Shown here one piece after another: positions 14,946 to 62,112 of a stretch of 64,000 nucleotides of DNA. Position 1 is the stretch's first letter, and each line of letters starts with the position of its first letter. Made by a program: the position numbers and the translations under genes. The stretch is taken from contig JAKMXF010000222.1 in assembly GCA_024704765.1 (NCBI GenBank), forward strand, positions 1,281,192 to 1,345,191, in the 5' to 3' direction. This DNA comes from Oopsacas minuta (taxonomy: Eukaryota; Animalia; Porifera). A model generated the notes under the pieces. The model ran no database searches, was not told the origin of the DNA, and was given only the letters and a program-made list of their open reading frames with translations.

Positions 14946-15106
14946 TACGTTCGCGCTTCTCTTGCTCTCGCTACACGGTTTCCAACACTTCGTGTCCGCA
15001 CTCGGGCCTACGTCCCTCGAGTGCATAAACTCATAATCTTAACCGTAGCAAACATGATACTGTCATAGTCCATAAACAAACAACAATCGAGATTTAATAA
15101 TATAGA
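14946..15106 (-). mobile_element. Short Helitron family B, copy 1
   Basis: Reverse complement aligns along its length to 61949-62112; A|TCTATATTATTAAATCTC start; 3' end decayed. Confidence 0.75.
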
Positions 15107-15355
15107 TTCTTGTCTAATCAATTTATTATTATTATTACTATTGAGCGATTGTTCTTGACTTTTGTCTACTTTCTCGACTTTGAATATATGTATGTAAAGA
15201 CTCAATTTTGTCGTAAAATTTGGAATCAGATTATCGTACTTTTGAGATTGTAGTACGTGAACTTTGAATTGTGTTTTGGATGGAAATTTCATCTTTGTTT
15301 AATGTATTAATTATTTGGATTCATAGCTATTTCATAACTAGCAATTTATCTTTTA

Positions 15356-16765
15356 ATGCGAGGCTGTCGTGTACTATTCTCCATCACATTTTGGGTAACA
15401 TTCGTGCCTTGTGTCTCTATAAGCATATTCACAATCTATTATCTTGTCTATTCAGGCTATTACTCATCCATAGATCTTTTCACCTCAAAGAAATCCATTC
15501 ATCTATCTCATCTCTACGATTATGATACAAGCACTGTTACCAAGGATTGTATGATTACACCTCAGATACAGTTACTTAATTATCCACCCACGTACACTTT
15601 TATTAATAAGAATCCCATCAATGTACTCAGAGAAATTTTATCAGAGAAATCATGGATTTATATTGACCCAAAATTAAAACAATCTCAGCTCCTCAGTTTC
15701 CTAAATAGAATTGATTTAATATTAACACATCCTACTGCTTATGTATTACACAAGACAGCTAAGATATTCTCTCAGCTCAGAGATGATGGTACTCAGTACA
15801 TTAATTGTATTGATAGAATGTATAACGTTACTGGGAACAAATATGTGCAGAGAAGAGTTATGGAAGATTTCGCGAGTAGTAATGGCTGCTTCCTGGACAG
15901 CCTGGGTATAATGCCGAAGACATTTTTATTAGGAGAATTAAACGAATGTAAATCTTTCTTTAGATACTCTAAGCGAGTAACAAACAGTTGGATATTGAAA
16001 CCTTATAGTGGGGAGGGAGGAGACGGTATAACGGTACATTCTGATGTTAGTAGTTTGAAGAATAAGTTTGATTGTAAAGTATCTAAGAAATATCTAGTAC
16101 AGGAATACATCAAGCCTCTTCTGTTGGATGGAAGGAAGTTTGATGTACGAGCTTATTTCTTAATAGCTCGTACAGATCCATTTCTGGTATTCTATCATCA
16201 TGGATATCTTAGATTATCTCTCAAGAAGTTTGAGATGAATACAGATATTGCCACTCATCTTGTCAACACTCACGTACAGAGCAAACACCGGGGATACAAA
16301 AATATAGCTCATAAACACATGTGGACGTTCAAAGAATTTCAGGATTATCTTACTGCTAACGAGTTAGTTGGGAAAAATTGGGTTGAAATGGTATTAGAAA
16401 AGTTTTTGAAAAGAGTTGCAGTTTATATATTTAACTCTGGAATAGATTTATATGCGAGGAGAAGAGGTAGTTTTCAGTTGGTAGGATTGGATTGTTTGGT
16501 AGATGATAAATTCCGTCCTTGGTTCACTGAAGCTAACAATTACCCCTTATGGATAGAATCAATACCAGAAGACGTACATAATGTGTCTGCTAACTTGGGG
16601 AGAGATATGCTAGACCTCGTGTTCATGCTGCATCAGGACCCTCCTGCTCATCCTCTATACCCCGGATACTCTTATGGTGGATGGAAACTGTTGTATAACC
16701 AACAAGTACAGAGATGTAACCCGGATCACTCACCTTATCAACCTTGTCATGATTTCCATTCTTAA
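15356..16765 (+). CDS. Tubulin-tyrosine-ligase-family ATP-grasp ligase closest to TTLL10, with an N-terminal hydrophobic signal anchor
   Basis: WILKP.SGEGGDGI, LVQEYIKPLLLDGRKFDVRAY, HHGYLRL, THLVNTHVQ, FQLVGLDCLVD and WFTEANNYP (ExN intact); residues ~6-32 are hydrophobic after MRGCR. Confidence 0.85.
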   Translation: MRGCRVLFSITFWVTFVPCVSISIFTIYYLVYSGYYSSIDLFTSKKSIHLSHLYDYDTSTVTKDCMITPQIQLLNYPPTYTFINKNPINVLREILSEKSWIYIDPKLKQSQLLSFLNRIDLILTHPTAYVLHKTAKIFSQLRDDGTQYINCIDRMYNVTGNKYVQRRVMEDFASSNGCFLDSLGIMPKTFLLGELNECKSFFRYSKRVTNSWILKPYSGEGGDGITVHSDVSSLKNKFDCKVSKKYLVQEYIKPLLLDGRKFDVRAYFLIARTDPFLVFYHHGYLRLSLKKFEMNTDIATHLVNTHVQSKHRGYKNIAHKHMWTFKEFQDYLTANELVGKNWVEMVLEKFLKRVAVYIFNSGIDLYARRRGSFQLVGLDCLVDDKFRPWFTEANNYPLWIESIPEDVHNVSANLGRDMLDLVFMLHQDPPAHPLYPGYSYGGWKLLYNQQVQRCNPDHSPYQPCHDFHS

Positions 16766-61912: not shown

Positions 61913-61948
61913 TTAATTTATATATTCTTGTTGAATATTTCCGATAGA

Positions 61949-62112
61949 TTTATATTATCAAATCTCAATTGTTGTCTGTCTGTCTGTCTGATTATGGCAG
62001 TATCATGTTTGCTATGTTTAAGATTATGAGTTTATGTGCTCGAGAGCCGTAGGTCCGAGTGCGGAAACGAAGTGTTCGCAACCGCGTAGCGAGGGCAAGC
62101 GAAGCGAGCTAG
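61949..62112 (+). mobile_element. Short Helitron family B, copy 2
   Basis: Family-A-like 5' end; canonical 3' end gcaagcgaagcgagCTAG|T. Confidence 0.85.

Follow-up and report, generated by a model that had tools for sequence, protein, structure and literature searches.

TTL and TTLL enzymes are known from textbooks as cytosolic enzymes that write the tubulin code, and those that have been characterised are, to our knowledge, all cytosolic or ciliary. A gene in the window (the whole 64,000-nucleotide stretch of Oopsacas minuta DNA analysed here) encodes a TTL-type ligase that begins with a hydrophobic segment. The locus raises the question of which side of a membrane such an enzyme works on. 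Our reading, to which we assign a probability of roughly 0.6, is that the product is a single-pass type II membrane protein that places its ligase domain in the ER/Golgi lumen or on the cell surface. The gene itself is as follows.

15356..16765, + strand: complete intronless CDS of an anchored TTL-family ligase (469 codons plus stop; ORF listing)

The 469-residue ORF contains no internal stop and its product is identical to the database protein P0001. Orthologues of the gene are intronless and syntenic, being flanked by an F-box gene and an RRM gene. The initial annotation had pointed out that the hydrophobic segment might be spliced out of the transcript; the contigs of run X4 cover the ORF and contain no splice joints within it. 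(Note that the kind of run that X4 represents is not on record, and that its depth tracks genes and so appears RNA-like.) The closest paralogue in the genome, L011/L019, is a two-exon gene without an anchor, as judged from its exons taken unjoined.

Most of the protein is taken up by the catalytic domain, to which the following features belong.

15536..16762, + strand: globular TTL/ATP-grasp domain and C-terminal tail, residues 61-469 (AF2 pLDDT mostly >90; Foldseek; Pfam)
15998..16537, + strand: catalytic and nucleotide-binding residues K215, Q249, K261, D263, R265, N304, D379, E392 and N394, all intact
16529-16537, + strand: E-x-N motif, E392-A-N394

Residues 153-422 (window positions 15812-16621) match the Pfam TTL family PF03133 with E=2.2e-41 and a score of 142.4 bits (cut-off 20.1). 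The AF2 model (pLDDT 90.5, pTM 0.85; globular part 60-469) was compared with solved enzymes by Foldseek, which returned TTLL6 with E=3e-21 and TTL with a target-normalised TM of 0.72-0.77, over 360-400 columns; by these two methods the N-terminal, central and C-terminal domains of the TTL-type fold are all present. Moreover, every motif on which the initial annotation had based its claim of an intact ATP-grasp TTL domain could be located (K215-P216, Q249-E-Y-I252, R260-K-F-D-V-R265, D379-x-L-x-D383 and E392-A-N394). K215, K261, D263, R265, N304, D379, E392 and N394 are invariant in 54 members of the clade described below, the exception among the listed residues being Q249, which is commonly Met in protist members. 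Judged from these motifs and from the model, the TTL domain of the window protein is catalytically intact.

The clade to which the protein belongs was defined by a profile search of the whole library together with two trees. It is recovered with 98% SH-aLRT support, and its sister is an anchor-less TTLL10-type clade (97%). Members come from sponges (including a Sycon RefSeq model that carries the NCBI name 'TTLL10-like'), labyrinthulomycetes, a euglenid and MMETSP protists; Hondaea, a thraustochytrid relative, is among them. (ESM Atlas taxa for P0009-type relatives include diatoms, arthropods and giant viruses, which we treat as leads only; we suspect that the contigs of these relatives derive from sponge hosts in ENA metagenome assemblies.) The count of anchors that had been proposed alongside a TTLL phylogeny showed that the anchor goes with the cysteine triad: it was found in 56 clade members out of 76 and in only one odd row among 18 seemingly complete TTLL10-type relatives (Fisher p=1e-7, for rows that are phylogenetically non-independent). 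The remaining 20 of the 76 seemingly complete clade members have no anchor, several of them being fragments or borderline cases. The earlier description of the protein as TTLL10-like therefore holds in so far as TTLL10 is the nearest characterised family, both by tree, in which the two are sisters, and by structure (Atlas TM 0.72-0.73), and in so far as the Sycon model bears that name; the window protein is not a TTLL10 orthologue, however, since it falls in a separate, 98%-supported clade.

In the window protein the N-terminus is organised as follows.

15356..15370, + strand: basic N-terminal tail MRGCR, residues 1-5, predicted cytosolic (MRGxR kept in orthologues)
15371..15451, + strand: 27-residue hydrophobic segment, residues 6-32, VLFSITFWVTFVPCVSISIFTIYYLVY, predicted type II signal anchor (Kyte-Doolittle; AF2 helix; dN/dS)
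15452..15535, + strand: disordered stem, residues 33-60, poorly conserved (pLDDT <50 at 40-57; sequence varies among orthologues)

Averaged over 19 residues, Kyte-Doolittle hydropathy peaks at 2.04 within residues 6-32, and the AF2 model places a helix over residues 4-41. The net charge of the flanks is +3 on the N side and +1 on the C side. Of 75 anchored family members, 63 have their more positive flank on the N side. Net charge averages +3.0 in the N-flank and +0.2 in the C-flank across the 75, and a more positive N-terminal flank predicts type II topology. Together with purifying selection on the segment (see below) and a model that runs from tail through membrane helix and stem to globular domain, this charge asymmetry argues for the type II signal anchor that had been suggested from the window sequence. 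If the protein is anchored in this manner by its N-terminus, its catalytic domain probably faces the interior of the secretory pathway. The predicted topology draws on hydrophobicity, on the charge rule and on a set of cysteines, which are given here with the glycosylation sequons.

15887..15889, + strand: C178, clade-invariant; proposed partner C464 (alignment A2; co-loss)
15947..15949, + strand: C198, clade-invariant; proposed partner C240 (alignment A2; co-loss)
16073..16075, + strand: C240, clade-invariant (alignment A2; co-loss)
16745..16747, + strand: C464, in the C-terminal tail, clade-invariant (alignment A2; co-loss)
15548..15550, + strand: C65, kept in sponges and in a small number of protists; possible partner C454 (weak evidence)
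16715-16717, + strand: C454, possible partner of C65 (C65 and C454 co-present in 6/9 informative rows)
15824..15832, + strand: N157-V-T sequon, in all listed glass-sponge orthologues except the most divergent, P0007
16580..16588, + strand: N409-V-S sequon, which includes Ser411; NVS, NTS or NLS in all orthologues

C178, C198, C240 and C464 are invariant in the same 54 clade members in which the catalytic residues are, and the cytosolic relatives, those of TTLL10 type included, lack the four-cysteine set, the TTLL10-type proteins usually having Arg at 198. Where the cysteines have been lost, they have been lost two at a time. Both C198 and C240 are missing from P0052 and P0094, each of which retains C178 (P0094 retains C464 too), and the reverse is seen in P0036 and P0175, which lack C178 and C464 and retain C198 and C240. 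These pairwise losses fit two disulfides better than a single metal site, and we propose from the alignment that C178 is bonded to C464 and C198 to C240. (Note that the part of the protein predicted to be lumenal has 7-8 cysteines, including C380, which is probably free, so that cysteine parity is uninformative.) The sequons NVT and NVS and the terminal cysteines that the initial annotation had listed are present, as N157-V-T, N409-V-S, C454 and C464, and the lumenal or extracellular placement that it suggested is consistent with the four clade-invariant cysteines and with the conserved N409 sequon.

It could instead be argued that the protein is tethered to a membrane and faces the cytosol, where it would act locally on tubulin or another cytosolic protein and where its cysteines would make up a Zn(Cys)4 site. 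Such a placement would accord with where characterised TTL and TTLL enzymes work; hydrophobic stretches as long as this one (27 residues) can favour the reverse orientation; and four invariant cysteines are possible metal ligands. However, the flank charges of the family point the other way, as does conservation of the N409 sequon, and a zinc site sits poorly both with the two-at-a-time losses and with cysteines that are distant in sequence, form no CxxC pairs and are nowhere within the clade substituted by His. Moreover, the protein stops ~45 residues past the TTL core, in a tail that holds the conserved C454 and C464, and a tail of this length leaves little room for a long cationic microtubule-binding domain after the core. 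We therefore regard a cytosol-facing enzyme as unlikely.

Returning to a ligase domain inside the secretory pathway, which amino acid might it use, and on what acceptor? Specificity sites were transferred by alignment from work on TTLL6 (bioRxiv 10.1101/2020.06.07.139295). In glutamylases the gamma-carboxylate of the donor is bound by two invariant lysines, K283 and K377 of TTLL6, at whose positions TTL has Glu and Tyr, and regioselectivity is associated with the position of TTLL6 Q180, which is Gln in elongases and Arg in initiases (bioRxiv 10.1101/2020.06.07.139295). Two of the corresponding residues of the window protein are as follows.

16319..16321, + strand: M322, at the TTLL6 K283 position (Lys in glutamylases, Glu in TTL, Met in TTLL3; alignment)
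16016..16018, + strand: G221, at the TTLL6 Q180 position (alignment)

S411 aligns with TTLL6 K377, in a register that is possibly off by one helical turn, in which case the residue would be G415. The donor pocket thus lacks both the Lys pair of glutamylases and the Glu/Tyr pair of TTL; M322 and S411 stand in their place, and hydrophobic or polar residues replace the Lys pair (M322; S411 or G415) as they do in glycylases. The mapping of these sites is validated by the glutamylase-type TTLLs of the same genome, L002 and L004, which, aligned together with the window protein, have a Lys at each of the two donor sites. Because the pocket is of the glycylase type, the donor is most likely glycine or another small neutral amino acid. 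Of the Gly or Glu chains that had been envisaged for the enzyme, then, the former would suit a pocket with M322 and S411, whereas Glu chains are unlikely because both of the lysines that define glutamylases are absent. At the Q180 position the window protein has Gly221 and most clade members have His, compared with Gln in 38 of 45 TTLL10-type rows. As aligned, G221 at the regioselectivity site is unlike the residue of any characterised TTLL, which makes a tubulin tail an improbable acceptor.

An acceptor that is not a protein at all would also be compatible with a lumenal enzyme, which might amidate a carboxylate of a small molecule or, in a glycan, that of a uronic or sialic acid. Acidic glycans abound in the Golgi lumen, Gly221 (or His, in most of the clade) differs from what is found in every tubulin-modifying TTLL, and the protein gives weak Pfam matches to other ATP-grasp families (YheC/D, E=3e-8; sugar-transfer-associated ATP-grasp, E=0.035). 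Yet the K261/D263/R265 block is invariant, the protein as a whole folds like TTL and the TTLLs, which modify peptides, and the closest relatives are protein glycylases. A non-protein acceptor accordingly seems to us quite unlikely, and a secretory or membrane protein that offers a carboxylate is, in our view, the likeliest acceptor.

A lumenal enzyme need not stay attached to the membrane, and the hydrophobic N-terminus might be a cleaved signal peptide that leaves the protein soluble in the lumen or secreted. Small residues follow the hydrophobic stretch (…LVYSG…), and in three clade members, P0030, P0047 and P0101, the hydrophobic segment begins at residue 1, as it would in a signal peptide. 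The 27-residue core of the window protein nevertheless far exceeds a typical h-region, and in the anchored family the segment has a median length of 21 residues and often follows a basic tail of 15-60 residues, an arrangement that fits signal anchors. Cleavage is for these reasons very unlikely.

The membrane-anchored reading also supposes that the segment belongs to the gene. In four syntenic species, conservation starts at the ATG and takes in both MRGxR and the hydrophobic segment, codons 1-35 evolve among the syntenic orthologues with a dN/dS of 0.19-0.43, and homology ends at the ATG, the upstream DNA being unalignable between species. Nor is the hydrophobic N-terminus there by chance: all full-length glass-sponge orthologues share it, and so do relatives farther away. 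By these sequence comparisons, the anchor is real coding sequence under purifying selection. It is scarcely credible, then, that the anchor is an artefact of the gene model and that a downstream Met (for example M66) or an upstream exon starts an ordinary cytosolic TTLL: the X4 contigs cannot define where transcripts start, but besides the conservation just described there is an in-frame stop 7 codons 5' of the ATG, X4 depth is already above zero at 15176-15372 with no joints found, and similar anchors occur in the Sycon RefSeq model and in protist transcriptome ORFs.

How does the window protein compare with enzymes that are better understood? TTLL10, which we take to be a tubulin/NAP polyglycylase and glycine elongase, shares with it the ATP-grasp catalytic residues and the hydrophobic or polar residues that replace the glutamylase Lys pair; apart from the differences in anchor, cysteines, regioselectivity residue and placement in the tree given above, the window protein is also without long extensions. 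By sequence, its best match among solved structures is TTLL3 (PDB 5vlq; E=1e-21), with which it has in common an identical M-W pair at the first donor position. The monoglycylases TTLL3 and TTLL8, in contrast, have Arg where the window protein has Gly at the regioselectivity position, and are cytosolic or ciliary enzymes with neither the anchor nor the set of cysteines. TTL and the glutamylases TTLL6 and TTLL7 resemble it in their three-domain fold (E down to 3e-21, TM up to 0.77) and catalytic residues. It differs from them in the donor-pocket pairs, and its core is probably followed by no long cationic microtubule-binding domain. In overall layout (a short basic tail, a single membrane span, a stem and a globular domain with cysteines and sequons) it recalls type II Golgi enzymes such as glycosyltransferases and sulfotransferases, and it would use lumenal ATP as FAM20C-type kinases do; these likenesses are analogies only, as the fold and chemistry of all three groups are unrelated to those of the window protein.

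We know of no eukaryotic ATP-grasp ligase that works in the secretory lumen. The remark in the initial annotation that no such enzyme had been characterised agrees with our search of the literature, in which we found no equivalent: neither a description of anchored or lumenal TTL enzymes nor any amino-acid ligase of the ATP-grasp type from the secretory pathway of eukaryotes. C. elegans TTLL-15 was considered as a member of the clade and set aside, because it has been placed closest to TTLL5 in a paper that mentions no transmembrane segment. ER-targeted ATP-grasp proteins in work on diatom silica were considered as a precedent, found no support in the literature searched and were dropped. A paper on hexactinellid silica proteins makes no mention of glutamyl, glycyl or ligase and so provides no lead to a substrate. 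The suggested link to the sponge matrix or skeleton is pure speculation. The clade is not restricted to sponges, with labyrinthulomycetes, a euglenid and MMETSP protists among its members.

TTL and TTLL enzymes first make an acyl-phosphate and then ligate an amino acid to it. For the window protein we envisage that the five-residue basic tail would remain in the cytosol as the 27-residue signal anchor directs co-translational insertion, and that a flexible stem would connect the anchor to the complete TTL-type ATP-grasp domain in the ER/Golgi lumen or at the cell surface. There, lumenal Mg-ATP would serve to phosphorylate a substrate carboxylate to an acyl-phosphate, to which a free amino acid would then be ligated through its amino group. 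More broadly, and tentatively (at slightly worse than even odds), we suggest that sponges and protists share an ancient clade of ATP-grasp ligases in the secretory pathway, which would carry out a TTLL-type modification, probably the addition of Gly or another small residue to carboxylates of secreted or membrane proteins or of glycans.

The clade is a large one, spanning sponges and many protists, for which we found no description in the papers searched, and the combination of anchor, four cysteines and donor-pocket residues offers a simple sequence signature by which members may be spotted. If our reading is correct, carboxylates would acquire amino acids by an ATP-dependent, non-ribosomal route in the ER/Golgi lumen or extracellularly as well, and an ATP-grasp ligase would join the short list of lumenal enzymes that use ATP. 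This would predict an as yet unrecognised modification of secreted or surface molecules, and with it a class of extracellular post-translational modification that has so far been without a characterised enzyme.

The gene under study lies in a window with a G+C content of ~35% and is a single open reading frame, with an in-frame stop seven codons upstream of its ATG. The features of the locus, in window positions, are as follows.

Features of the locus
14990-15115: dispersed repeat of ~87 bp (core about 15014-15100); the ATG lies some 250-340 bp further downstream
15356-16765, forward strand: the TTL-family ORF, 469 codons
17883-19526, forward strand: downstream neighbour, 547 aa, rich in Arg/Asp/Ser repeats
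near 61948-62070 (contig C222:1343139-1343261): second copy of the repeat

Pfam TTL matches residues 153-422 of the protein (E=2.2e-41; 142 bits against a cut-off of 20.1), and among solved structures the best match by sequence is Xenopus TTLL3 (5vlq, 1e-21), followed by TTL and thereafter by TTLL7 and TTLL6. The motifs quoted in the initial annotation, the sequons at N157 and N409 and the terminal cysteines C454 and C464 were all found where it had placed them, and the ORF, Pfam and motif checks confirm its observation on this sequence as a whole. In an AlphaFold2 model, made from an alignment of 54 sequences of the clade described below (mean pLDDT 90.5, pTM 0.85), residues 4-41 form a single long helix, residues 40-57 are disordered (pLDDT <50) and residues from about 60 to 469 make up a globular part modelled with confidence. 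Foldseek aligned 360-400 columns of the model with TTLL6 (E=3e-21) and with TTL (target-normalised TM up to 0.77), and the closest ESM Atlas cluster is named 'inactive polyglycylase TTLL10' (TM 0.72-0.73). Profile, fold and catalytic residues all place the protein in the TTL/TTLL superfamily. As modelled, it would be built like a type II Golgi enzyme: a short basic tail leads into a TM helix, and a flexible stem links this helix to the catalytic domain.

The initial annotation had claimed that the protein begins with a hydrophobic anchor. The N-terminus reads MRGCR; the next 27 residues (6-32) carry no charge and are mostly hydrophobic (maximum Kyte-Doolittle mean over 19 residues, 2.04). The order F-box, TTL, RRM is common to three other assemblies, in which the TTL orthologues are 63-74% identical and all intronless; in pairs among these four syntenic genes with unsaturated dS, codons 1-35 have a dN/dS of 0.19-0.43, and the DNA 5' of the ATG is unalignable between species. 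MRGxR and the hydrophobic stretch are conserved in all full-length glass-sponge orthologues, and relatives at just 31-36% identity carry a similar basic tail and hydrophobic segment. The dN/dS values and the conservation from MRGxR onwards show that the anchor is genuine coding sequence. The N409 sequon (NVS, NTS or NLS) is present in every glass-sponge orthologue, and that at N157 is retained by all except the most divergent.

Whether transcripts splice out the hydrophobic segment was examined in read contigs of four runs from one study. Depth was flat, ~100x and DNA-like in three of the runs. In the fourth, X4, depth was near zero over the upstream spacer and 360-600 over the ORF, with no joints; this pattern resembles RNA, the kind being judged from the pattern alone, with contigs that define no 5' end. 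That X4 depth follows the ORF without joints argues against splicing-out of the anchor. A single X4 contig (16540-17908), at lower depth, bridges the entire spacer from the TTL gene to its downstream neighbour, whose syntenic orthologues have RRM_11/RRM_1 matches; this could represent read-through or a long UTR. At the upstream repeat read-contig depth rose from ~100 to ~52,000, and a query of the genome with the repeat gave 240 first-look candidates, 40 of which were scored (82-96% identity, many contigs, both strands). The repeat resembles a MITE or a SINE.

Searched with a profile, 1.84 billion representative proteins yielded 13,920 TTL-family matches (574 below 1e-30). In most of the best 150 of these, aligned to the profile, C178, C198 and C240 are all cysteine, the remainder usually having Arg at 198. 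Counting as complete those rows with a Met start and at least 120 residues ahead of the C178 column, and as an anchor an upstream hydrophobic segment of KD at least 1.6, we found an anchor in 56 of the 76 Cys-triad rows and in 1 of the 18 others (Fisher p=1e-7, for rows that share ancestry and are non-independent). Of the 20 anchor-less Cys-triad rows, many are borderline, are fragmentary or represent the second domain of a tandem protein. A TTLL phylogeny, as the initial annotation had proposed, was built as two trees, and these agree in placing the Cys/anchor proteins, including that of the window, in a single clade (98% SH-aLRT in the smaller tree). Its sister (97%) is an anchor-less clade that includes Pinctada and Haliotis proteins named TTLL10. 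The sponge sequences form a subclade of their own (96% in one tree, 87% in the other). Read from few named sequences, the range of the Cys/anchor clade takes in the sponge Sycon ciliatum (XP_065186459.1, 'polyglycylase TTLL10-like') and, among protists, Hondaea fermentalgiana (GBG32757.1, 'TTLL10'), Mucochytrium quahogii, Ploeotia vitrea and MMETSP transcripts; such type names were assigned automatically by the database.

Some protist members are tandem proteins whose second TTL domain is degenerate. In the tandem forms P0028-P0032, P0036, P0055 and P0062 (clade members from protists or metagenomes) the active, anchored domain comes first, and the second retains the cysteines and has lost catalytic residues (e.g. 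KQWDK, NGR); it may be a pseudo-enzyme partner.

We compared the net charge of the 15 residues on either side of the hydrophobic segment in 75 anchored members. The excess of positive charge lay on the N-flank in 63 members and on the C-flank in 8, with no difference in 4 (mean +3.0 for the N-flank versus +0.2 for the C-flank). By the positive-inside rule this excess predicts an N-in, C-out, that is, type II, topology.

Invariant catalytic columns in the 54-sequence alignment are K215, K261, D263, R265, N304, D379, E392 and N394, and exactly four cysteines are invariant as well: C178, C198, C240 and C464. These four are missing in the TTLL10-type sister group and in the genome's own cytosolic TTLLs. 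They might together form a single Zn(Cys)4 site; however, the few exceptions among the clade's database members drop cysteines in pairs. C198 and C240 are both gone in P0052 and P0094, which keep C178 (and, in P0094, C464), and P0036 and P0175 have lost C178 and C464 and kept C198 and C240. Loss by pairs favours two putative disulfides, C198-C240 and C178-C464, as the better fit.

Searching the O. minuta assembly (365 contigs, 61.46 Mb), we found about 13 TTL genes, three of which, the window gene (L010) included, are intronless with an N-terminal hydrophobic segment. The other two are:

L006:1072-2583 (contig C310): 504 aa; MKLIRRRK, then a hydrophobic stretch; His for Asp263
L008:979-2625 (contig C166): 549 aa; N-terminal hydrophobic segment, intronless

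Both are just 24-27% identical to the window protein and without the four-cysteine signature, and their long branches fall close to the glutamylase-type genes; on these sequence grounds they belong to one or two separate lineages. The closest paralogue of the window gene, L011/L019, has two exons (taken unjoined) and is anchor-less.

In TTLL6, the donor glutamate is bound by K283 and K377, which are invariant in glutamylases; glycylases have hydrophobic or polar residues in their place, and TTL has Glu and Tyr. The Q180 position governs regioselectivity, elongases (TTLL10 among them) having Gln there and initiases (TTLL3 and TTLL8 among them) Arg, and H362 pairs with the free carboxylate of the acceptor (bioRxiv 10.1101/2020.06.07.139295). 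We mapped these sites through a TTLL6 alignment of L002, a glutamylase-type gene of the O. minuta genome, and a common profile alignment. As controls, L002 and L004 have Lys at both donor positions, TTL Glu and TTLL3 Met align to the first donor position, and the TTLL10-type group has Gln at the Q180 position.

Equivalents of TTLL6 specificity sites in the window protein (profile alignment)
Q180: G221; H, G or Q in the clade
K283: M322; F, I or M in the clade
K377: S411, or G415 under a one-turn shift of the helix register; T or S in the clade
H362: N395; G or N in the clade

The missing Lys pair rules out a glutamylase, and the missing Glu/Tyr pair a TTL tyrosine ligase. Nor is the protein a TTLL10 orthologue, since it falls outside the TTLL10 clade and lacks the elongase Gln; the label 'TTLL10-like' holds in that the sister clade contains TTLL10-named proteins and the nearest Atlas cluster is TTLL10. 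The donor-pocket residues are glycylase-like, and our best guess is that the donor is glycine or another small neutral amino acid. Thus, of the Gly/Glu chains suggested initially, Gly stands as the best-guess donor and Glu is unlikely, given the missing Lys pair. None of the characterised TTLLs has the acceptor-selectivity residue of the window protein, G221. The published residues also separate the canonical TTLLs of this genome cleanly in that alignment: those of L002 (R, K, K) suggest an initiase-type glutamylase, those of L004 (Q, K, K) a glutamylase of the elongase type and those of L005 (C222:242841-243668; R, I, C) a monoglycylase of the TTLL3/8 type.

A role in the sponge skeleton or matrix, as had been proposed, is unsupported because the clade reaches non-silicifying protists and a calcareous sponge. 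C. elegans TTLL-15, considered as a counterpart, is unrelated. In a full-text search of the literature we found no description of a signal-anchored or lumenal member of the TTL family, in agreement with the initial statement that no such characterised enzyme was known; the Cys/anchor clade is large and without description in the literature searched. The enzyme fold and chemistry are known. What would be new is the predicted compartment, which is unprecedented, and it would be new for a whole clade rather than for a lone gene.
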